DNA of 64,000 nucleotides from Lepidodermella squamata (GCA_047495785.1 JBLDXI010000073.1:434001-498000); one strand, 5' to 3'; positions 1 through 44,024 are shown, numbered from the stretch's first letter. A program made the numbers and translations. Notes: generated from the sequence alone by a model not told the origin.

Positions 1-660
1 TTTGCCAGTCGATGATTACTATTCTAATGAGATCCTACGCCTCTGCATATAAAATACTGTCGTAGACAGTAAAATTTGCCATCCTTTGTCAGTTACATGT
101 CAATTATAAATTATAATTGATAATTATAATTATAATGGATTTTTCATGGAATTTTGCTCTGAATTAGGTGACTCAATTGAAGCATCCTCGTAGAAAATTA
201 ATATCAATCAACTAATTTTCCTCGAGCGAGAGACAGATAAGTAAGACGTAAGACGTGACACAAATGACCCTCCCACTTGATCTTTATGCTGATTTATTTT
301 TCATAATTTGTCACGCAATTAAAAAGGTCACGGCAAACTTATTAAATATTATGAACATTAGTAGCAAGTATATGCTTCTCACGGTACATGCGGCAAGAGA
401 ATCAGGCTACAAGTAATATTTACTGTGAAACAATCTAAAAAGTGAAATTATCACACAGATGACCAATTCGAGAGAATTTACAGTTAAAGCAATCGCTGAA
501 CAACAAAATAAATACAGGCAACAACAAACAATTCATACGAGTTTCCTTAATGGATGTAGATTAAATGCTATACCACAGGGGATTTACTTTGAAATTAGTT
601 GTTTTTTTCGAAAATGCTTCGAAAATGAGCAGTGTGCTTATCGCCATTCAGGTCAGGCTG

Positions 661-7380
<6,720 letters not shown>

Positions 7381-22200: not shown

Positions 22201-24065
22201 CCAACTGCTATTGCCGAAATAATGAACTAAGAATAAAGTCTCCATACTAATAGTGAATTATTGCTATGATTGTCCCTATAACACGGCTAGTCCGATGTTA
22301 CATAAGCCTGAACAAGCTCCTCCGTTCAAGCAGGGCGACGAACAGGCCGCTACAGATTGAAACAAACGGTAAATTGACTAGAGAGAACATTTAGGAAGAT
22401 TTTACCTAGGATAAGTTGAGCAATCTGGACCAGTCTATCGTCCATTAGGAAGTTACCGTTGGACCCGCAGAAAGTTTTTATTCTACATATTTCTTTTAGT
22501 CCAAATCAGGTGTGTTGATTCGTCATTGATATTTGATATCATTGAAACGTGAGAGTGTAATGTGGGACAAATCACGACTAAATCCAAATACCAGTTGATA
22601 CGTGATAGGAACACAAACAGGAAAATGTAAGATTCCTTTGCCTGTTTTCTCATATTTTCGATATTTTCGATATATTCAAGTTTCCCAGACCTGTGCGTCA
22701 AAAACCTATGAAATATATTTTTTAATCTTGAAACCCTTCTAACATTGCCGAGTTCATATATATATTTATTTATTGCAATTTCAGCCACGTGTATTCCAGC
22801 CTGTGCAAACGGCGGCATTTGCTCCTACGTCAATCTGTGCACCTGCGTGAATAGCTACTACGGATCGCGCTGCACGCAATGTGAGGCTTGCAAACTTTCG
22901 ATTCCATCTCATACCTATGTTTTTTTTCTCAAGTTTCATGTGTTAAAACATGCCAGAACGGTGGCACTTGCACAGCCCCGAATACTTGCACCTGCGCTGC
23001 TGGATGGAAAGGCGAGGATTGCACTACACGTATTGAGCTCATCTTGAAGCATTGGCCATTCAGTCGATTTTCAATTATTTACAGCCATTTGCAATTCACC
23101 TTGCCAGAACGGAGGTACTTGTATCGCTCCAAACACGTGCAAGTGCGATGTTGGATGGAGAGGGGCTACTTGTTCTCAGAGTAAGGAGCATCTTCAAGGA
23201 AATGCAAAACTACGGACTGATTTCATTTCTCAGCCAAGTACTATTTATCCGCTAGCTCAGCTAATTTCCGCGAAGCTGCGACAAATTGTGTGTCATCAAA
23301 CAGCCGTGCTGCTGTCATTTACTCTCAAGGTGAGTGGGATAAGGCGAAGATCAGTTTGGGGAGTGAAAGCAAAGTTTGGCTCTCGCTATCGGCCGGCTTT
23401 CTCTGGATCTACGACAATTCGCCAGTTGGGTTGTCTAATATATGGGGAAGTGGCGAGCCGAGTGGCGACGGCAGTTGTAAGTTTTGATCAGCAGCTCTAG
23501 CTAGTCTATTTGCTGTTACTCTCTCAACTTCAGGCATGGAAGTTTTAGGTGGCGTGCAAGGCTTAAACGATGAATCTTGCACCTCAACTCGAAGTTCACT
23601 GTGCCAAGATCCAAGCAATGTGAGGATTTTCTTGTTTATGAAAGTCCTCAAATTATGCTTTATTTTCTTAGGAAAATGACATCACAGTTGTCACCCCGGC
23701 TGGTATTTGGGATACAGCCAAAGCAAAATGTGAAGCAGTGGGTCGAAAATTGGCAGTCTTGAGGACGAGAGCACTTGTTGATGCAATGTTGAGCGCATCA
23801 AAGAATGGGTGGATAGCCGGTAAGCGTCCTGATGGCAATAATTTCTACTGGTCCACGGGCGTCGCTGTCACGCCGAGCAACGTCATTCCGCCGTGGGCTC
23901 CAGGCCAGCCTGAAATAAGCAATAACAAGCAATGTAAGTTGGCATCATGGCCTTTATGTTGCGTTAATTCTGTTTTTTTCAGGCGTAACGATGGACACAT
24001 CGGGTCAAATGACGGTAGAAAGGTGCAGCAACAGCAACTATGCGCTATGCGAGTATACAAACTAG
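19278..24065 (+). CDS. Copy C: secreted 17xEGF + 2xCTLD protein
   Basis: MNVILVVIFG|[18 protein letters not shown]; same 23-exon structure as copy B; EPS and QPE motifs; TAG at 24063-24065. Confidence 0.88.
21816..22185. mobile_element. hAT-type MITE with (TTGAT)n interior
   Basis: CAGTGCTTT...AAAGCTCTG with TSD CCTGAGCC. Confidence 0.85.
22307..22436 (-). pseudogene. Inverted fragment (end of EGF12, intron, start of EGF13) inside an intron of copy C
   Basis: The reverse complement reads GACTGGTCCAGATTGCTCAACTT…GTAAAATC…TGTAG|CGGCCTGTTCGTCGCCCTGCTTGAACGGAGGAGC. Confidence 0.9.
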
Positions 24066-31214: not shown

Positions 31215-32452
31215 CAAGAGGGGCTTATGAAAGCCAGGCTGAACAAGTTCCGTGACAATATGCTTTCAGCTTTGAGTTCTATCAGTATTTTTTCGGTAGT
31301 TCCCCCCTTGAACCTGAATCTACAAATGGTTTGCATCATAAAATCGTTATCATCGTGCCTTTTTTTGAAAGCCTTTGCTTCCTGTTTGTTCACGTAAATA
31401 AACGCTTTGATTTCAATCGAGTTTTTTAACGGCATTCGAGTATAAGGTATAACAAGGAGCCTAACCAGAGGGGGGAACCTTATGTTTTCTTTCCTGGCCA
31501 CTGCGGAAACTTGAGCAATGTAAGGACGGCCCTAACTTATATCCCCTTTCGGTAAACTCCCCATCTTCTACACTGCACAACGCTCCAATGCTTTGCGACT
31601 TGCCAGCCCATTCATCGATACTTTTTGAACGGTGCCTAACGACCGAAGTCCTGAAGATTCAGCGGTTAAAACTTGTCTTGATACACCGGAAGGTTCAAAT
31701 TTGTTCCAGCCCTACATCATGCTGAAGATGAAAACGCAGAAAGTTAACGTAATAATGATATATCCTGTATAGAATACGCTCGGTTAGTAGCTGGATCTAC
31801 TAATTGCCAAACCTGCCGACCATGGAGGATTGAAAAAAATTGCCAACATTTATTAAACAATTGCTGAAGAACCATGGCTAAAAATAAAGCTGACGCCCAG
31901 CCACTTTTAGATGCATCAGCAACAGCTTCAACATCACTTTCATTCTGGTCGATTTCCCATTTTATTTACAAACTCAAAAACTATGTAGGGCATTTTTAGC
32001 AATTTGAAAAAATCCTAAAATCCCGAGAAAATAACTACCACGTAAAATTCTTCCCGTGAACTTCTCTCTGAGGTTCCATCAAAAAAATTGAGAGAACCAG
32101 CTCAGACTTAAGGGAATTGATTGACGTAACATTTTTCTAAGTTATACATTCAAATGATTAATCGCAAAGCCTCTTTTTGCAAACGATGAATGCACAGATG
32201 TTGCTAACCTGAATCTTGAACGGTAAAAACGCTATTCACGGTTCGAGAGGCAAGTTGCAAGTCATTGTATACATTTTTGCAGTCGAAAGCAATAGATAAC
32301 GACAACAGATCTCAGAAAAATCCGAACAGAATTTGATCCAAAAAGCAAAAAATTTAAGTAATAAAGGGGAACTCCCCGTTGTCGTGGGCCGTCTTTGTTC
32401 GTTCCGTCCGTCCGTTCAGACTGCGTTCAAGCGACGGCGAGGCGTAAAAAAA

Positions 32453-32472
32453 TGTGTGTGTGTGTGTGTGTG
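32453..32472. repeat. (TG)n microsatellite
   Basis: tgtgtgtgtgtgtgtgtgtg. Confidence 0.9.
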
Positions 32473-32533
32473 CCAAAAAGGGAGTGCCTATTCCAACCCT
32501 GGTTTTTCCGACAGGCTTGAAAAGTGTATCTGA

Positions 32534-32796
32534 CGGTTATTTTATGCGTGATGTGGCTCTCAACACTTCCCAATCTATAGCCAATGTTGAGTTGTCGTTA
32601 TAGTATTAGTGAATTGTCGAGTTGTCTTCTGCCGAATTGTCGCTGAAGGGTACGATGAATTTTCACTGCCGAGTAGTCGTTTGCCGAGTTGTCGTTTTCG
32701 ATCGAATACAAAAATATTGCCGAATTGACGTTTGCTGAATTGTCGCTGTCGAATAGTCGTATTCCCAATTTTCGTTGCTCAGTTGTCATACAACCG
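32534..32796. mobile_element. MITE-like element with about 15-bp internal repeats
   Basis: CGGTT...AACCG termini with repeated TGCCGAATTGTCGCT-like units. Confidence 0.55.
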
Positions 32797-33270
32797 CTAA
32801 TTATTTCGGTTTAATTTTCGGATATATTTGGCTCGAATTATTTCGTTCGGAGATATTCTCAGCAAAATGAATTATTCGAGCCAAAAATATAGAAAATTTA
32901 AACGATATTATTATCGCAGAAATTTTACCAGATAGAAACATTCTAATCATTAATTTTCTTAGAATTTTCATAATGTTCCCGAAGACAAAAACGCGGCAGA
33001 AGAATGGCAAAGATGCCGATAATTTGCAATTTGCAAATAGCTGTTTTCACCAATTTCTTGAAAATTAATTATAGGAGCCTGGAGCCTGCAAGATTTACTT
33101 TGGTTTCATTATTTGATAGACCGTGAAATCTGGTCTACTGAAACTGAAAAAAATTTTCCAATTAATAAAACACCGTTTCAAGTCCTTTAAAAATTGGTGA
33201 TCAATCATTATGTTTCCGATATTCCGGGTCAAAGTCCATCGTCATCCAGCAAAAAATTGCAGTTGGTGAC

Positions 33271-34605
33271 TTGGTGACTTGGTCGCATCTGTGTCTGACT
33301 TGGTCGGGATGGATCGAAAAAGGCCTGGTGAACTCGAATGGCGTCAATGACATCAGACTTCAAATAGACGGAATGGGTGGTAGAACCAGCATGGCGGAAG
33401 GTTATATCTCTGCCAATATTTGCTTGCCATCTAGAAAGCGAAAATTGGGCAGCGATGGTGAGTACCAATTGGCAGTCTTCAAAGGAAAGGAATCCAGTGA
33501 AAATTTCCGCAATTACCTACACTGTCGATGAACTGGTTAATCTTGTAAGAAATGGTATCGAGATGGAAAAAAATACGGCTTTCCTGTTTCGGTTTGATAA
33601 TTTGCGCGGACTATCCCGCTCTTGTTGAATTGTTAGGTTGTGGTCATCAAAACAGCCATTGTCGTTGCGTTATTTGCACTCAGGACATTCGAAAAATTCC
33701 AGACTTCGCTACTGGAGAAACGAAAAAACGTCGATTTGATCTTTACACGCCAGATCAGAAAGGGAAGGTTGGATGGTCCAAAGACTTCAAACCAATGATT
33801 AATTTGAGCCCCCAAAGTTGATAATTATTCCCGACTTTTTGCACATGCAGATCAACATTGGTAGGAAACTGTTTCAAGCGGTTTGTGAATAAAAATAAAA
33901 TTTATTATTAACTTTTCCGATTAGATGTTCGAAAATTTGAACGACTTCAAGATGAAAGGCCCAATCCGCCAGTTGTAAAGCTTTATTGAACAGTCAGTGA
34001 ATATTACTGTTGATGTGAGAACCGTTCGCTCCAAGGTTTGCGTCACAATAAAAAATACCAATCATCACGGATTTGCCAAGGTGAGCTCTGAGCTTGAGGA
34101 AATACCTGTTGAAAATATTGAATTTTAAGGCTTTCAAGGCTTTCTCAACCAGACTTGCCCCAGAGCCGTTGATGAAAGCTTTTTTTGTGCCTGACGACTG
34201 GCGTGGCCAAATTCGTAGAATGTACCGCACGCATTCGCGATTCGTCTAAACCTGAGAACCGATTTTTGAAAAGGCTAGCCGATGTTCGAAGGCTTTTCAT
34301 CGCGGCGCTACTGGTTTTCGACGATGTGCGAAAGGCGAGATCTGGAGCAGGAAAACTGATGCTTTACAACTTCGAATCTACATGGCAAAGAACTGTTGGG
34401 CCAGTCACCTCCTACGCGCATCTTCTTGCCAGACACGTACGAATATCTTGATCAAGGTATCGATCTTTACGCCTTGTCGACAGAATCGATAGAAATCATG
34501 TTGAAACAGCAGCGTTCTGATATTGCGAATAATACTACTAATGCTTCAGCCATTCCGCGACAAATCCTGGGCCTCGTAAATATTCGGGAAAGCTTGTTCT
34601 TTTGA
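33271..34605 (+). pseudogene. Degraded RAG1/Transib-like DDE transposase (frameshifts, stops, two short introns)
   Basis: Motifs in order: IDGMG (33367), ADYPALVELLG…SHCRCVIC (33609), PDFLHMQINIG (33830), YAHLLARH…STESIE (34413-34494). The D-x18-CxxC and H-x4-H-x19-E spacings (the latter after repairing one frameshift) equal those of the RAG1 core. GT-AG introns lie at about 33881-33925 and 34081-34129. Confidence 0.8.
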
Positions 34606-34719
34606 TAAATATGCGCTTATCATTTAAATTCCAATTAAAGATAAATAAAGAGAAAAGAGAAATGTCATCAATCACTTTTATTGTTTCTTTATTGGATGCT
34701 CGTCTTCAGTCTGAAGTAT

Positions 34720-35030
34720 TCAGAATTTGTTGACTTTGTAACGCATTCTCTCGCTGTCATATACAAGTTCATAACCATCTTTGCGATAGAATTTGAAAGC
34801 AAATTTTCCAGCCTTGAATTTTTCGTCGATTACCCTGATGTGCTTAGCAATAGCTGTTTCGGTGCGCCCTAGACTACTCGACAATCCCGGCTCGTTCTCG
34901 CGAAGGTAAAATTTCAGCGCTGTTGTTGTGCAGCCTTCGATCCTCTTCACCCTAACCAGCGAGGTGAAGGCATGGCGCGAATGGTTTTCTTCATCGAATA
35001 TCCACGGTACTTTTTCACGATGAGCGTGAT
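34720..35030 (-). other. Convergent open exon (about 103 codons) of unknown function inside the putative Transib-like element
   Basis: TTCAG acceptor at about 35031, then an open frame HAHREKVPWIFDEENHSRHAF…YKVNKF*. It lies tail-to-tail with the transposase, with AATAAA signals on both strands between them. Confidence 0.4.
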
Positions 35031-35090
35031 CTGAATTTCAGAAATATTAAATTAGTCGGATATGGCTTTCAGCGCGAGCAGTATAGTTCT

Positions 35091-35126
35091 GAAGTTTTGT
35101 TTCTAATTTGAATATAGGCCATCGTG
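35091..35126 (-). repeat. Putative Transib-type right terminal repeat (CACGATGG…ACAAAACTT)
   Basis: The minus strand reads CACGATG-19 nt-ACAAAACTT. Only 39 nt of host intron separate it from the orphan lectin exon. I did not find a partner left TIR. Confidence 0.5.
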
Positions 35127-35165
35127 AAAATCTAGAAATTTAAACTGCAATTCTTTTTCTTTTAG

Positions 35166-35708
35166 GTATGGAAATTTTGAGTCCGAACGGGATTAACGAT
35201 CAACCTTGCGGGGACCCAAGTCGAAATGCTCTCTGCCAAAATCCAAACGATGTAAGAAAACTTATTGTATGTGACGGTCCCAATAAGTTTTTTTTCCAAA
35301 GATAACTGACGTCCAAGCCATCGGGCCGGCTACTCAAAATTGGGCGGACGCTAAAGTCACATGTGAAACCAGAGGACTAAAACTTGCAATCCTTAGGACA
35401 AGGCCGCTTGTTCAGCAAATGCTGGACCAAGGGAAGGTTGGGTGGATTGGCGGAAAGCGCCCGCCTGGCAATAATTTCTACTGGTCCACGAACGTCGCTG
35501 TCACGCCGAGCAGTGTCATTCCGCCATGGGCTCCAGGCCAGCCTGAAATAAACGATAAAAAGCAATATGAGATGATATTTTTGTAACATTAATCGCTTTT
35601 TTAATCGCAATTTGCGGTAATTCAGGCGTAACGATGGATACGTCGGGTCAAATGACGGTTGAACGGTGCAGCAACGCCAACAATGCGCTATGCGAGTATA
35701 CAAACTGA
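35166..35708 (+). pseudogene. Orphan lectin cassette (last three CTLD exons) of a family member whose 5' part is lost
   Basis: Open exons MEILSPNGINDQPC…, ITDVQAIG…GQPEINDKKQ and VTMDTSG…CEYTN*. The last donor is AT instead of GT (35567-35568). Confidence 0.85.
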
Positions 35709-36640: not shown

Positions 36641-36885
36641 CGATTTCCTCGATTAAAAAAATCAAATTATAGAAAAGGTTTCAGCTATTTTGTTGATTCA
36701 TTTTGTTGTTTCTGTTTTTTCCATCTTTTTTATTTTTTACCTTGAAAAATGAAAAACCAACATCCGTAGTATACTTTTATTGCTAGGTGGACAAAAGGTT
36801 TCCTCAGCTGTTTACCACTGGGTTGCAGGGAGCTGAGATTTAGTCCTTCGCAACATTCAAGTGATTGATAAAAGAAATTTGACTC

Positions 36886-37440
36886 ACGCGCCGTGCAATC
36901 TGATCCTGCCCAGCCTACCGGACAGCTACAGGTATGCAAGTCCTATGCAAGTCCCCACGTTACATAAAACTTTAACACAGAAAAATGATTGTTATTAACC
37001 ACTGAAATTCCGAAGAACCTACTGCTGCAGCCAATGCAAGACCCGCCATTTTGATACGGGTTCTTCGAGCAAGCGGCTAAATGAGAGAACTAGAATGATT
37101 TGAAGCCTCAAACATCCTTTCTCTCACATATGCCATAGTTCGGACCCATCCACCGTTCGAAGTAGTTGCATTTGTTAGAGCTAACGCAAGTTCGCCCATT
37201 TTGACAAAGAAGGTCATCAAAGTTAGCTAGTAATCGAGAAATTTTAAAGCTTCTCGAAATAGGTGTTTTTCCATTACGGATATCGCAAATAAAAGAACAG
37301 TCAAATTCGCACTCATGTTTTGCCGTTTGCCTTTTGTGGTTGGCATCGTACGCAATGTTTTAATCGTTGTTTTTTCACAAACAACGGCTGAGTTTCTAAA
37401 CAGTTGAGAAAGTCAGTTCGGAAAACCTTTTGTCCACTTT
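36886..37440 (-). pseudogene. Inverted, internally deleted relic (C-type upstream region + EGF2-5 remnants)
   Basis: The reverse complement matches 18770-18955, then decayed EGF3 (NFDDLLCQNG…), EGF4 and EGF5 exons. Confidence 0.85.
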
Positions 37441-37651: not shown

Positions 37652-40600
37652 TGGCCTTCAGGCGAATATTTTCCGCTATCCGCTACAAAGCTCCCAGATA
37701 TTGTATACTATTTCAGTTATAGCGACAGTGTCGAAAGGCGAGAGTTTTTATTTTTCCTTTAAATTTTAATCCAATCAGATACCAATCAGAATCAGAAAAT
37801 ATACAATACCTGATATTTTCATCTCAGAAATTAAAGACTCAGCCTCCTAGGCCGCTTGCGATGATGCTTTTGTGTGCCTATCAGGCCCATTAGCTATTAG
37901 CGCTAGTAAACTAATATTCGTTGATGAACAAAAAAATGTGAGTGAGAAAAAATATCGCATAACGCAGCACGCATGGAAAATTCGTGAGGAGCCTCTTTAC
38001 TAAATAAAACAAACTAAGGATGAAATTAAAAACATGAGAACAACATGGGTTCAAGTGAATATAGCACTTTCGCGCTTTGTGCGGTCAATTACGTGAGCGT
38101 TCATCTCCTTCAACCACCGGTATGTATAGTGGTTTAGCTCTTAACAACCAGCCGACCGCGCTTACGTTTGTGTCACATTAGCCGGGAGCATATAAAATAC
38201 AACAGAAAAAGTGTTGAATTCAACATTGGGCAAATTTGTTTAAGGATTGCTCAGGTCAATTTCTGCATAACATGACGCTGATACTATTCCTACTCTATGG
38301 TAATATCCTGAAATCACTTCATCAAATCATTCGGCTTGTTCCTCAAAGGTCTGTATGGGTCGAGCTTGGGATGTACGCCGAACGAATCTCAGAAGAAAAG
38401 CGCGGTAAATGATGGCGCTCGAATTGTAGCCCATCTCATGAAACTATTTTCCTAACCAGCTTTGGTGCTCGAATGGGGGAACTTTCGACTCGGCAAGCGG
38501 TTCTTGCATTTGCCCGCCTGGGTATGGCGGTTCCCAGTGCGAAAAATGTACGCAACTATCTTACGGAGATTCAACGTGCTAGTTTTTCCCGTTCGTCTCA
38601 TAGTTACGTGCCCCAATTGTCTCAACGGAGCAAGTTGCAGCGGCCCGAACAAATGTAGCTGCGCTTCAGGCTGGTCCGGCCAGAACTGCGAAACTTGTAA
38701 TGGAAATTAATCACTTATTGCCGTTAATATTCATCAATAACTAGCTAACTGCGTTGACCTACCCTGTCAAAATGGCGGAACTTGCGTCGGCGCTAACAAA
38801 TGCAACTGCACAGATCGGTGGATGGGTCTAAACTGTGGCACCTGTAAGAACAGGGTTCTTCAAGGTTTAAAAGTGACTTTAATTAGTCTGATTCAGCTGC
38901 TTGCTCGAAGAACCCATGCAAAAACGGTGGGACGTGCATTGGCTACAGCCTTTGTTCTTGCTCGACTGGCTACTCCGGTTCCGACTGCGGCAGTGGGTCA
39001 TTTCAAAATTCGAAGAATGATTATCCTCCTTGTGTATTCAAGTTTTCTGCAATCCGCCCTGTGCAAATGGTGGAATATGCCGAGCCGGTAATACATGTAG
39101 CTGCCCTGTTGGCTGGGCAGGATCGGATTGTACGACGCGTTAGTGCTATACAGAAATGCTGTAATTGATCTCATGAAAAAATTGAATCGCTATTCCACAG
39201 CTTCGTGCAACCCTGCGTGTCAAAATGGCGGGTCATGTACGAGCCAACTGACTTGCACTTGCCCTGATGGCTACACGGGCCTTACATGTGGAGTCTGTAC
39301 GTCGAAATAATTGTTGCCTCCCTCTCGTGAATGCTAACATTTCCCTTCAGTTACCTGTTCTCAGACTTGTGCGAACGGCGGTAGATGCTCGGGGCCGAAT
39401 ACTTGCACGTGCGCCGATGGTTGGACTGGAAAGGATTGTACCACACGTATTTGCCTTCGATCATTGTGTTAGTTCCTCTCAGCCCGAATCAATTTCAGCC
39501 ACATGCTCGCCGGCGTGTGCCAATGGCCTTCAGGCGAATATTTTCCGCTATCCGCTACAAAGCTCCCAGATATTGTATACTATTTCAGTTATAGCGACAG
39601 TGTCGAAAGGCGAGAGTTTTTATTTTTCCTTTAAATTTTAATCCAATCAGATACCAATCAGAATCAGAAAATATACAATACCTGATATTTTCATCTCAGA
39701 AATTAAAGACTCAGCCTCCTAGGCCGCTTGCGATGATGCTTTTGTGTGCCTATCAGGCCCATTAGCTATTAGCGCTAGTAAACTAATATTCGTTGATGAA
39801 CAAAAAAATGTGAGTGAGAAAAAATATCGCATAACGCAGCACGCATGGAAAATTCGTGAGGAGCCTCTTTACTAAATAAAACAAACTAAGGATGAAATTA
39901 AAAACATGAGAACAACATGGGTTCAAGTGAATATAGCACTTTCGCGCTTTGTGCGGTCAATTACGTGAGCGTTCATCTCCTTCAACCACCGGTATGTATA
40001 GTGGTTTAGCTCTTAACAACCAGCCGACCGCGCTTACGTTTGTGTCACATTAGCCGGGAGCATATAAAATACAACAGAAAAAGTGTTGAATTCAACATTG
40101 GGCAAATTTGTTTAAGGATTGCTCAGGTCAATTTCTGCATAACATGACGCTGATACTATTCCTACTCTATGGTAATATCCTGAAATCACTTCATCAAATC
40201 ATTCGGCTTGTTCCTCAAAGGTCTGTATGGGTCGAGCTTGGGATGTACGCCGAACGAATCTCAGAAGAAAAGCGCGGTAAATGATGGCGCTCGAATTGTA
40301 GCCCATCTCATGAAACTATTTTCCTAACCAGCTTTGGTGCTCGAATGGGGGAACTTTCGACTCGGCAAGCGGTTCTTGCATTTGCCCGCCTGGGTATGGC
40401 GGTTCCCAGTGCGAAAAATGTACGCAACTATCTTACGGAGATTCAACGTGCTAGTTTTTCCCGTTCGTCTCATAGTTACGTGCCCCAATTGTCTCAACGG
40501 AGCAAGTTGCAGCGGCCCGAACAAATGTAGCTGCGCTTCAGGCTGGTCCGGCCAGAACTGCGAAACTTGTAATGGAAATTAATCACTTATTGCCGTTAAT

Positions 40601-41399
40601 ATTCATCAATAACTAGCTAACTGCGTTGACCTACCCTGTCAAAATGGCGGAACTTGCGTCGGCGCTAACAAATGCAACTGCACAGATCGGTGGATGGGTC
40701 TAAACTGTGGCACCTGTAAGAACAGGGTTCTTCAAGGTTTAAAAGTGACTTTAATTAGTCTGATTCAGCTGCTTGCTCGAAGAACCCATGCAAAAACGGT
40801 GGGACGTGCATTGGCTACAGCCTTTGTTCTTGCTCGACTGGCTACTCCGGTTCCGACTGCGGCAGTGGGTCATTTCAAAATTCGAAGAATGATTATCCTC
40901 CTTGTGTATTCAAGTTTTCTGCAATCCGCCCTGTGCAAATGGTGGAATATGCCGAGCCGGTAATACATGTAGCTGCCCTGTTGGCTGGGCAGGATCGGAT
41001 TGTACGACGCGTTAGTGCTATACAGAAATGCTGTAATTGATCTCATGAAAAAATTGAATCGCTATTCCACAGCTTCGTGCAACCCTGCGTGTCAAAATGG
41101 CGGGTCATGTACGAGCCAACTGACTTGCACTTGCCCTGATGGCTACACGGGCCTTACATGTGGAGTCTGTACGTCGAAATAATTGTTGCCTCCCTCTCGT
41201 GAATGCTAACATTTCCCTTCAGTTACCTGTTCTCAGACTTGTGCGAACGGCGGTAGATGCTCGGGGCCGAATACTTGCACGTGCGCCGATGGTTGGACTG
41301 GAAAGGATTGTACCACACGTATTTGCCTTCGATCATTGTGTTAGTTCCTCTCAGCCCGAATCAATTTCAGCCACATGCTCGCCGGCGTGTGCCAATGGC
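37652..41399 (+). repeat. Apparently exact 1872-bp tandem duplication
   Basis: 37652-39523 equals 39524-41395 (identical ORFs offset by 1872), with TGGC microhomology at the junctions. Confidence 0.95.
38272..39641 (+). pseudogene. Copy E: truncated duplicate of F (signal + 7 EGF, then a novel read-through tail)
   Basis: The EGF8 exon is broken at 39527 and the frame continues ..CANGLQANIFRYPLQSSQILYTISVIATVSKGESFYFSFKF*. Confidence 0.8.
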
Positions 41400-44024
41400 G
41401 TTTGCAAAGCTGATAAAACTTGCGACTGTACTGGAACTGGTTACACTGGAACTCGGTGTGAAACTGGTACGTTTAATCTATGCTTTGCGATCAAATCATC
41501 TTTAATTATATGGAAATTCCGGTGTAAACGATCATTTCCCCTTGTTTTTGCAGCCGTGTGCTCCCCTGCTTGCGTAAACGGCGGAGGTTGTTCGAGACCG
41601 AACACCTGCTCATGCATCAACGGTTACACTGGGCCTACCTGTTCAATCTGTTTGTGATTTTGGTTGCCATTGAAATTTCAGGCTATATTAACTACTAATT
41701 CTACAGCATCTTGCTCGCCTGCTTGCTTGAATGGCGGAACCTGCAACGGCAATAAGTGCACATGTGCCCCTGGTTGGACAGGAAATGATTGCTCTATTCG
41801 TGAGTCTTCTTTTCAAATATCCCAATATCCTAATAGCCTCCAGACATTTTTTAAAACATTTTGAAATATTACTCTGTTTTGAAAGCTTTACATCACAACA
41901 AATTTGCTTTGTTTCTTTTTATGCGAAATTTCCCATTCATGCAACAAAAGCAAAGACCTCTCTTGGTCTTATACCGGGGTTCATTATGATAGCATTATCT
42001 CATGTAATAACGTGTATTCATTAATATTGCAGCTACTTGCACGCCGGCTTGTCAAAATGGCGGCACCTGCCTCGGTGGCAACGTATGCAAATGCTCGAAT
42101 GGCTACACAGGCTCAACGTGCTCAGATGGTATTGCAATAACAGACAAGTTGTTGGCAGCTTTTAATGATGATTTTCTCATGACGCAGCCGTGTGCACTCC
42201 AACGTGCAAAAATAATGGCCGCTGCACTGCGACAAATCTGTGCGCTTGCGACTCCGGATGGACTGGATCGGATTGCTCAACTTGTAAATCCTATATTCAA
42301 TTCCTCTGATAAATTTAATATTTTCCAACTCCTGAAGCGGCTTGCTCATCGCCCTGCTTGAACGGAGGAGCTTGTTCAGGAACGAACAAGTGTACTTGCG
42401 TTAATGGATACACTGGGGCAACGTGTGCTGCATGTGAGTCATCGCTTCATCGTTATTGCCCGTCCATCTAATACCCATCCTTGTCACCAGATACGTGCTC
42501 CCAGACTTGCAAAAATGGAGGTGTCTGCATATCCCCAGACAAGTGCAGCTGTGGTGATCAATGGACCGGAATCGACTGTAGCATTCGTAAGTTGAGATGA
42601 TTATTTTTTAAATTCTGAGGATAAAATTATGGCTGCAAATAATCAATTTTACTACAACTTTTCGCTGGAATATGCTTATCGAATATGCTGAATATAAAAT
42701 ATCATTGTCATTTCAGCCACGTGTACTCCAGCCTGTGCGAATGGCGGCATTTGCTCCTACGTCAACCTGTGTACCTGCGTGAACAACTACTACGGCTCGC
42801 GCTGCACGCAATGTGAGATTAGCAATAATTCGATTACATCCATACAACATATGCTTTGTTCTTCAGTTTCCTGCATTAAAACTTGTCAGAATGGTGGCAC
42901 CTGTACAGCCCCAAACACCTGCACTTGCGCTACTGGATGGAAAGGAGATGACTGCACTACACGTAAGGAGCTCATTTCAAAGCTTGGGCCAATCAACAAA
43001 CTTTTCAAACTTTTCCTAGCGATTTGTAATTCTCCGTGCCAGAATGGAGGAACTTGTATAGCTCCGAACACGTGCAAGTGCGACTCAGGATGGAGAGGGG
43101 CTACTTGCTCTCAGAGTAAGGAGTTTTATCAAGGGAAAACAATGGTGATACTTGATTCTACCCTACAGCTAAGTACTATCTCTACGGGTCCCAAGATACT
43201 TTTCGCGTCACTACGACTGGTTGCGAGACTCCAACTAGCCGCGCTGCTGTAATTTACTCGCAGAGCGAATGGGAGAAGGCGAAGATTAGCCTGGGGACAA
43301 GGAGTAAAGTTTGGATTGCACTATCGGCCGGTTTTCGTTGGATATACGATAACTCTCATGTTGAACTGTCAGATGCCTGGGGAAGTGGTGAGCCAAATGG
43401 CGACGGCAGTTGTAAGTTTTCAAGATGCCGCTGTCTCTTTTTTCACTCGCTTGCGTATACTGCAGGTATGGAAATAATAGCAAACTTCAATGGTCTTAAT
43501 GATTACGGTTGCACCCGAACTAGAGGCGTGGCAATCTGCCAGGACCCGGGCAATGTGAGAAAATTAGATTTAAAAGTAAAATAAGCCCGATTTTCGTCTA
43601 CCAGGTGAATGCCATAACATATTTGCAAAACACTTTTACTTGGGACGATGCAAAAGCTGCATGTGAATCAAATGGGCTGCGACTAGCTGTGGTTAAGACA
43701 ACGCCACTGGCTCGGTCGATAGCCAGCGCCCTGTACGCGTTACCTGGGCAGGCAGGATGGATCGGTGGCCGCCGCCCAGAAGGCACTAATTTCTACTGGT
43801 CGACAGGCGCCACGGTCACGCCGAGCAATGTCATTCCGCCATGGGCTCCAGGCCAGCCTGAAATCGACGTCACCAAGCAATGTGAGCTGATAATTTACCT
43901 GTAATAGTCGTCTTTTTCAACATAAATTTCCCGTTATTCAGGTGTGAATATTGACACATCAGGCCAAATGACAGTCGAAGGGTGCGGCTCCACGTACGAT
44001 TGTCTATGCGAGTATACAGCTTAA
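40144..44024 (+). CDS. Copy F: secreted 17xEGF + 2xCTLD protein (EPN in CTLD1)
   Basis: MTLILFLLYG|[18 protein letters not shown]; 23 exons; GEPNGDGSC and GQPE motifs; TAA at 44022-44024. Confidence 0.9.

Follow-up and report, generated by a model that had tools for sequence, protein, structure and literature searches.

The window, by which we mean the whole stretch of 64,000 nucleotides from Lepidodermella squamata that was analysed, holds at ~33270-35052 on the + strand the relic of a transposase gene. That it is a dead, doubly truncated remnant of a transposon of the CMCT (CACTA-Mirage-Chapaev-Transib) clade is close to certain. The more specific reading that we prefer, at a probability of roughly 0.6, is that of a dead internal fragment of a two-gene CMCT transposon, most likely a Chapaev-like one, lying beside a 5'-truncated copy of a lectin gene. 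The placement in the CMCT clade follows from the RAG1-type architecture of the transposase, which would consist of a region before the RNase H domain, an RNase-H DDE core and a C(2)C...H(3-4)H zinc site. The placement in a Chapaev-like lineage of that clade follows from the 3-bp duplications found in relatives, the size of ~585 aa and the neighbours that carry DUF1280. The original prediction had claimed a dead DDE transposase relic whose fold resembles that of RAG1, which is borne out by the frameshifts, the stop codon and the fold match described below.

The transposase relic, its relatives and the partner gene

Translation of 33150-35200 in all frames recovered a transposase pseudogene that is interrupted by six frameshifts and one stop codon (Table 1). 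The equivalent of exon 2 is spread over four frame pieces (33316-33528, 33524-33601, 33588-33818 and 33809-33889), and the equivalent of exon 3 over another four (33925-34125, 34127-34234, 34230-34439 and 34426-34602, followed by the native stop at 34603-34605), with a TAA stop at 33976-33978 and frame changes near 34100, 34226 and 34436. The four protein motifs listed in the original prediction are indeed present, on the + strand and in the order claimed: QIDGMG at about 33361-33378, ADYPALVELLGCGHQNSHCRCVIC (i.e., D-x8-G-x5-S-x3-CxxC) within 33588-33818, PDFLHM within 33809-33889, and HLLARH...STESIE, which straddles the frameshift at about 34436. In the translation of the window, piece 33316-33528 contains NDIRLQIDGMGGRTSM and piece 33588-33818 contains LIICADYPALVELLGCGHQNSHCRCVICTQD, piece 33809-33889 ends with IIPDFLHMQINIGRKLFQAV and piece 34230-34439 with GPVTSYAHLLARHV, and piece 34426-34602 contains YEYLDQGIDLYALSTESIEIMLK.

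Table 1. Positions of the relic, its parts and the adjoining features in the window.
Feature	Position	Strand	Remarks
Whole relic, internal piece of a two-gene DNA transposon	33270-35052	+	both ends truncated
Limits of the relic	left 33250-33316; right 35052-35070		from protein homology, Logan contig ends and depth
Transposase pseudogene, exon 2 equivalent	33316-33889	+	RNase-H-like core: D1 (RLQIDG), D2 (CADYPA), CxxC, DFLH
Short intron, GTGAAT...ATTAG	33882-33924	+	43 nt, GT...AG; position of the exon 2/3 intron of relatives (after ...AV)
Transposase pseudogene, exon 3 equivalent	33925-34605	+	NTNHHG block, HLLARH (H-x4-H), STESIE catalytic-E block
Last exon of convergent partner gene	34720-35037	-	105 codons and stop, without start codon
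CACGATG-N19-ACAAAACTT	35092-35126	- (reverse complement)	outside the element
Lectin exon, C-terminal strands of CTLD1 (GMEILSPNGINDQPCGDPSRNALCQNPND)	35167-35251	+	homology begins at its AG acceptor (A1)
CTLD2 exons of truncated lectin copy	35302-35708	+	Pfam Lectin_C, E 1e-3; A1

When 1.84 billion representatives were scanned in full by HMMER, the 90-aa CxxC piece recovered six proteins, five of which are relatives, all of them fragments; a profile search added three more. All relatives reside on short metagenome contigs of the ENA, from which 16 loci were fetched, and a scan of JGI metagenomes with profile A4 returned pattern matches and no relative. Each piece of the window copy aligns to the relatives at 38-51% identity (tblastn E 1e-10 to 1e-31). 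For the exon 2 equivalent, the E values against three loci (L001, L005 and L004) range from 1e-24 to 1e-31, and the exon 3 equivalent matches exon 3 of L005 with E 2e-10. To judge from these alignments, the family is a genuine one and a very rare gene family in public data. The position of the intron is also shared: the window reads KLFQAV/gt before MFENL, L005 has SLITAV/gtaag before IFDSL, and L001 has ILTKV/ before IFDIL.

In the alignments of the window copy with its relatives (A2, A4 and A5) the two D residues and RCxIC are invariant, and HLLA[CR]H or HL[VL][SR]H is followed by an [ST]E[SN]IE block. PD[FLV][FL]HM is conserved in A2, and the histidines are spaced as H-x4-H in the window and the L005 lineage and as H-x3-H in L013 and L015 (A5). 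On the strength of the comparison, the motif set is not a product of chance, since it is embedded in alignments to the open reading frames of relatives (tblastn 1e-17 to 1e-31, 38-51% identity).

An apparently complete element was found in L005, where it extends over about 3.2 kb (264-3511), from CATTATAACTCGGTTTT to AAAATCAAGTTATAATG. Its transposase gene has three exons of about 114, 258 and 211 codons (~585 aa), the second intron being at the place of the window intron, and is followed by a 300-bp spacer with tandem repeats and by a three-exon partner gene on the opposite strand; subterminal short repeats occur at 330-400. The left boundary is fixed by three differing flanks (L005, L006 and L001) and by a contig that starts at CAT (L007); L001, a paralogue 62% identical to L005, carries CATTATAAGTCAG behind yet another flank. 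A second right flank is supplied by L011 and L012. An inverted repeat at 585-617 and 3579-3611 of L005 was considered as the terminal repeat and rejected, as a coding exon runs through its left arm.

Two 3-bp duplications, measured on metagenome contigs of relatives that are 38-51% identical to the window copy, were found in this lineage: ATG on both sides of the element in L005, and ATA on the left in L006 and on the right in L011 and L012, of which L012 is a chimeric assembly that combines the left flank from one site with the right flank from the other. A more distant sublineage (L013-L016) has ends of the type CATTGTGCTACC... and an acidic, Myb/SANT-like partner encoded on the same strand. 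The flanks of L013, ATCGT and ATTGT, are a single pair that fits a duplication of 5 bp at 4 of 5 positions, on a contig that may be chimeric.

In the window the open reading frame of the partner gene lies at 35037-34723 on the - strand, and TTTCTGAAATTCAG just upstream of it looks like a typical short-intron acceptor site. It matches the L005 partner at 3001-2765 (tblastn E 2e-6), with which it shares a GRxxTxIAK block. An ESM feature search gave weak winged-helix/OmpR-like matches (0.90) for the partner, and a Pfam search with the exon gave no match. The partner is probably a small DNA-binding protein of a Myb/SANT-like or winged-helix type. If the family behaves like other members of its clade, binding of the transposase to the inverted repeats with their CAT ends, perhaps aided by this partner, would be followed by cutting at the DDE site and by reinsertion through a 3-bp staggered cut.

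Decay and limits of the window copy

Logan contigs from the one public run that contains this DNA were compared with 32000-35500 at 80% likeness. Their depth is 39-49 in the unique flanks, is several times higher over 33287-35052, and sums to 130-345 over 33287-35041, where the contigs differ by a few per cent from the window; contig depth does not equal copy number, and these data point to several other copies in the same genome, which seem to have fewer lesions than the window copy. Compared with the window, the other copies have 5 extra nucleotides behind 33519, 1 fewer at 33593, 1 extra behind 33808, 4 fewer at 34226 and 2 extra behind 34436, as well as an A at 33976, where there is consequently no stop. 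The variant contigs carry indels at five of the six frameshifts of the window in addition to this A, which replaces the T of the stop. Since the five indels fit in size and place to undo one frame change each, and the substitution removes the stop, the lesions are private to the window copy.

Homology to the relatives begins at 33316 according to tblastn, or at about 33283 by eye, and a unique Logan contig ends at 33251. About 175 codons precede the start of the window homology in the relatives, and the sequence upstream in the window has no match to them; the 5' third of the transposase gene and the left end are therefore gone. The loss of the left end had been claimed in the original prediction, and the relic is indeed 5'-truncated.

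On the right side, a 479-nt contig of the other copies (depth 135) stops at 35052, and the contig that is unique to the window (depth 39) starts at 35023, with a k-1 overlap. The depth falls here from about 160 to about 50, and its value in 35042-35158 permits at most about 18 more shared bases. From the contig ends and the depth it follows that the similarity to the other copies stops at 35052-35070, a breakpoint that relies on Logan contigs, which may break at any variant, and that the depth puts no further right than about 35070. This point falls within an intron of the partner gene, just upstream of the acceptor of the partner exon, and the equivalent position in L005 is ~500 bp short of the terminus with two exons still to come. 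The 114 bp that remain before the lectin exon are too short for two partner exons, so that the right end is also missing. Position 35064 (...GGATATG), a right end of the CAT..ATG type with a weak likeness to CATTATAAGTCAG, was rejected as the end of full-length copies because a splice acceptor, in a stretch in which the other copies have no indels, precedes the partner exon, which itself lacks a start codon; the 5' exons of the partner must lie beyond 35064, as 114 bp are insufficient for them. The window copy is dead: it is without the first ~175 codons, both termini and the 5' exons of the partner. With both ends deleted, nothing at this locus could be excised.

These limits bear directly on the RSS-like end, CACGATG at 35126, with which the element had been supposed to terminate. 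For the heptamer CACGATG, 9 occurrences were counted in the window, where about 8 would be expected, and the looser pattern CACnnTG-N10-25-ACAAAA occurs twice. The string lies 22-74 nt past the end of the similarity to other copies, and it has no counterpart in the termini of the relatives (CATTATAAC... and CATTGTGCTACC...). Judged by these frequencies and comparisons, its resemblance to an RSS is coincidental and it is no element end. The supposed terminus is refuted by the shared sequence, which stops at 35052-35070, and the contigs of the other copies thereby place the end elsewhere than at 35126, an outcome that the original prediction itself had named as speaking against it. Of the span 33271-35126 given there, the start is about right and the end is wrong. 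It had also suggested that the array be scanned for more TIR-like signals; neither a second copy of the transposase (tblastn, blastn) nor an inverted-repeat-like signal was found elsewhere in the 64-kb window.

Placement within the CMCT clade

The C(2)C and H(3-4)H motifs are common to EnSpm, Mirage, Chapaev, Transib and RAG1 (Kojima, 2025, PMC12730594), and the clade is characterized by CA..TG termini and duplications of 2-5 bp (PMC12730594). Chapaev elements are defined by duplications of 3-4 bp together with C(2)C, LH and H(4)H motifs (Zhang, 2014, PMC4079192), and DUF1280 is the Chapaev transposase, which groups with RAG1 (Majorek, 2014, PMC3985635). The whole CMCT clade has C(2)C, LH and H(3-4)H in common (PMC12730594, PMC4079192). 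In the light of this comparison, the list of motifs that had been taken to point to RAG1/Transib reads as the signature of the whole CMCT clade and is unspecific for RAG1/Transib. The motifs being clade-wide, the CACTA models matching the fold equally well and the relatives having 3-bp instead of 5-bp duplications, that attribution is not supported. Our tests favour the accompanying hedge of a "divergent lineage of the CMC/Transib group". With CAT...ATG termini in three sublineages and 3-bp duplications in relatives, the CA..TG ends and 2-5-bp duplications of the clade are present in the family. Within the clade, we placed the family by duplication length, fold and language-model neighbours, and no tree underlies this placement.

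The fold was assessed with an AlphaFold model of a relative (P0007, residues 26-281), built from an 11-row family alignment, which is of good quality in the core, with a pLDDT of 68.5 and a pTM of 0.72. In a Foldseek search of the PDB with this model, the top 46 matches were all RAG1, HzTransib or BbRAGL (best E 1e-4). VIA-align gave a Z score of 10.9 for RAG1 (217 residues, rmsd 4.4, with 27-256 of the model on 471-806 of RAG1), 8.7 for BbRAGL, 7.5 for HzTransib and 6.2 for the next unrelated chain. The predicted structure thus supports a RAG1-type fold that includes the region before the RNase-H core and ZnC2; the model of the C-terminal half has a pLDDT of 52 and a pTM of 0.31, and the ZnH2/E/CTD part lies outside the fold evidence. 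We know of no structure of a CACTA, Mirage or Chapaev enzyme in the PDB, so that the ranking of PDB matches cannot discriminate within the clade. Among the predicted structures of the ESM Atlas, TM scores were 0.62-0.63 for plant and fungal Transposase_21 (CACTA), 0.62 for a DUF1280-bearing cluster and 0.60 for RAG1. The Foldseek check proposed in the original prediction, carried out on the model of the relative, therefore came out as expected for the PDB, with RAG1 and HzTransib on top, but predicted CACTA and DUF1280 clusters match equally well.

The language-model neighbours of the CxxC piece of the window ranked in the order Plavaka, Transposase_21, RAG1 and those of P0007 in the order DUF1280, RAG1, Transposase_21, i.e., the two queries disagree. 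At the sequence level, the pieces, the intact relatives and profile A4 had no match at E <=10 to the Pfam models RAG1_RNase_H, RAG1_ZnC2, RAG1_ZnH2, Transposase_21 and DUF1280, all eight window pieces and the intact relatives gave nothing relevant in Pfam, and P0007 and profile A4 had no match at E <=10 among PDB sequences.

Could the family nevertheless belong to the true Transib/RAG1 lineage, with a transposase nearer to RAG1 than to the CMC enzymes? The top solved structures are RAG1, BbRAGL and HzTransib over the pre-RNase-H region, RNase H and ZnC2, the motif order D...D...CxxC...LH...HxxxxH...E has similar spacings, the search with P0007 ranks RAG1 (0.96-0.97, 194-199 shared features) above Transposase_21 (0.92), and the two-gene layout resembles that of ProtoRAG. 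The H-x4-H-x16-E-x2-E-x2-NK block also mirrors HKTLAH...SEGNESGNK of RAG1. In addition, the termini of L013 (CATTGTG) are one mismatch away from the heptamer CACTGTG, while 4 of the 5 positions agree between its two flanks. However, predicted CACTA and DUF1280 clusters score the same or higher, HzTransib reaches a Z of only 7.5, and no match to Pfam RAG1 models or to RAG1/Transib sequences was obtained, even with the profile. The two clean 3-bp duplications in the L005 lineage differ from the 5-bp duplication of Transib, there is no inverted repeat of the heptamer/nonamer type (CACWRTG with an A-rich, nonamer-like block), and the partner looks like a small, helical DNA binder instead of a RAG2/Kelch protein. 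A Transib/RAG1 affiliation is, therefore, very unlikely. The duplication length and the lack of an RSS-like inverted repeat speak against Transib, and the family is most likely Chapaev-like.

The Chapaev-like placement agrees with the presence of DDE, C(2)C, LH and H(4)H, the 3-bp duplication, a transposase of about 500-600 aa, the occurrence in animals, and DUF1280-bearing clusters as the top neighbours in both language model and fold (PMC4079192, PMC3985635). It is at odds with the termini, which are CAT..ATG in the relatives and 'invariable' CAC..GTG in Chapaev, with the duplications (ATG and ATA against the TWA of Chapaev3), with the lack of an hmmscan match to DUF1280 and with the second gene of the family. 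On the termini found in the relatives, the CAT (not CAC) ends are atypical for Chapaev. CACTA/En-Spm and Mirage share the motifs of the clade as well, and CACTA elements also have a 3-bp duplication, reach predicted TM scores of 0.62-0.63 and have subterminal short repeats, like those at 330-400 of L005; they differ in that neither Transposase_21 (CACTA) nor DUF4218 is matched in our family, and the elements, also in comparison with Mirage (DUF1258), are much smaller and do not have CACTA termini.

A less likely alternative is that the family, being neither Chapaev nor Transib, forms a separate deep branch within the CMCT clade that has no name as yet and is of a standing similar to that of ESTA, Lanisha or Plavaka. 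The missing sequence-level match to named families, the CAT termini, the family's own partner gene, its extreme rarity (6 representatives among 1.84 billion in the search with a single piece, and 7 clusters in that with the profile) and Atlas neighbours that are mostly unnamed clusters would all be consistent with such a branch, but the LH motif, the 3-bp duplication, the size of ~585 aa and the DUF1280 clusters at the top of the neighbours are in keeping with Chapaev. This interpretation would differ from the Chapaev-like one only in rank.

The lectin array and the meaning of the relic

In the window, genes that each encode three EGF repeats and two C-type lectin domains (CTLD) are arranged in a tandem array. 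In the alignment with the paralogues at 23.5 kb and 30.7 kb (A1), the homology of the 35-kb copy starts exactly at the acceptor at 35167. The paralogue exon at 23221-23484 covers positions 2-77 of the 107 of the Lectin_C profile; in the paralogues, such an exon precedes an intron of about 80-420 nt, after which a short exon completes CTLD1. A segment of 730 bp with the EGF repeats and the head of CTLD1, present in four paralogues, is missing from the 35-kb copy, and the relic stands in the position that belongs to the EGF repeats and to the initial three quarters of CTLD1. The claim that the relic adjoins the 3' portion of the CTLD1-splitting intron, in a lectin copy that has lost its 5' part, is thus corroborated by A1. 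The donor of the last intron (35567-35568) is AT in this copy and GT in both paralogues, and the next segment of the array (36820-37288) is inverted relative to the other units. As read from these comparisons, the adjoining lectin copy is a 5'-truncated fragment of the tandem EGF-CTLD array and probably pseudogenic. The simplest and probable history is that the element inserted in the CTLD1 intron or close to it and that deletions or a rearrangement came afterwards.

The original prediction had drawn a parallel with the receptor-splitting origin of V(D)J recombination. This parallel is only an analogy. The element inserted in an intron or upstream, and the lectin copy itself is a fragment in which a splice donor is mutated. 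A functional tie of the relic to the lectin array, be it as a domesticated or still-cutting recombinase or as a diversifying signal, would be in line only with its position, next to a CTLD-splitting intron among diverged paralogues that lie in tandem. It is nonetheless extremely improbable: the six frameshifts and the stop are called private to the window copy, both termini are gone and the partner is truncated, the 64-kb array contains no second copy or inverted-repeat-like signal, and in the lectin copy next to it the 5' half is missing and AT stands in place of the GT donor. Nothing suggests a role in lectin diversification. The locus is an inert fragment, which shows that the insertion of a transposon and deletion reshaped one member of the lectin array.

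The wider significance of the finding lies with the family, which has a RAG1-type fold without detectable sequence similarity, keeps a partner gene and is very rare in public data. It is unlikely that, of the elements outside Transib found so far, the family is the one most closely related to RAG1, situated between Chapaev and Transib as an intermediate step to the RAG transposon. If this were true, it would be a two-gene animal transposon with a full RAG1-type architecture, 3-bp duplications and CAT ends, and its value would reside in the intact copies elsewhere in the genome, the window holding a dead fragment. The family could act as an extra outgroup for rooting CMC, Transib and RAG1.

State of the truncated lectin copy and its array

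The last intron of the 5'-truncated lectin copy adjoining the transposase relic has AT at its splice donor, where both aligned paralogues (2/2) have GT. Together with the absence of the 5' half, this suggests that the copy is a pseudogene. An array segment of this 35-kb unit is inverted with respect to the equivalent segment in other units; the unit has thus been rearranged besides being truncated. The lectin/EGF array also contains a direct tandem duplication of 1.88 kb, the copies of which are 99.95% identical, whereas the other array units share 70-89% identity; the duplication is far younger than the remaining units.

In the public sequencing run that holds the DNA of the window, summed contig depth rises to 800-1500 over two short stretches, compared to ~45 for unique DNA. 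Among these stretches lie a hairpin with arms that are 82% complementary and a (TG)n tract. The stretches probably represent MITE-like repeats of high copy number, one of which adjoins the left breakpoint of the relic.

Coordinates of the features discussed
Feature	Sequence	Position
High-depth stretches	window	32351-32818; 33170-33250
(TG)n tract	window	near 32441-32482
Hairpin	window	32809-32903
AT splice donor	window	35567-35568
Inverted segment	window	36820-37288
Equivalent segments (examples)	window	27014-26490; 50730-50207
Tandem duplication	window	37652-39530; 39524-41402
Octamers GAGTGTCG	L005	330-400
Intergenic repeats	L005	2400-2560
Octamers GTGGCGGA	L001	290-340
Sister-sublineage element	L013	788-4012

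Relatives of the transposon in metagenome contigs

Two of the metagenomic relatives, L005 and L001, carry subterminal tandem octamers, and in L005 three ~50-bp repeats separate the two genes. Possibly these octamers and repeats serve, as in CACTA elements, as binding sites for the transposase or its partner.

A sister sublineage of the family (L013, also L014-L016) has a perfect inverted repeat of 14 bp, CATTGTGCTACCGC, which differs by one mismatch from CACTGTG, the complement of the RSS heptamer. Its transposase has H-x3-H in place of H-x4-H, and its acidic, Myb/SANT-like partner is encoded on the transposase's own strand. The flanks of the L013 element, ATCGT and ATTGT, agree at 4/5 positions.

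Comparison with L005, L006, and L011 shows that in another contig, L012, the left flank of one insertion is fused to the right flank of another. L012 is thus an assembly chimera spanning a repeat, and it warns against inferring duplications from single contigs.
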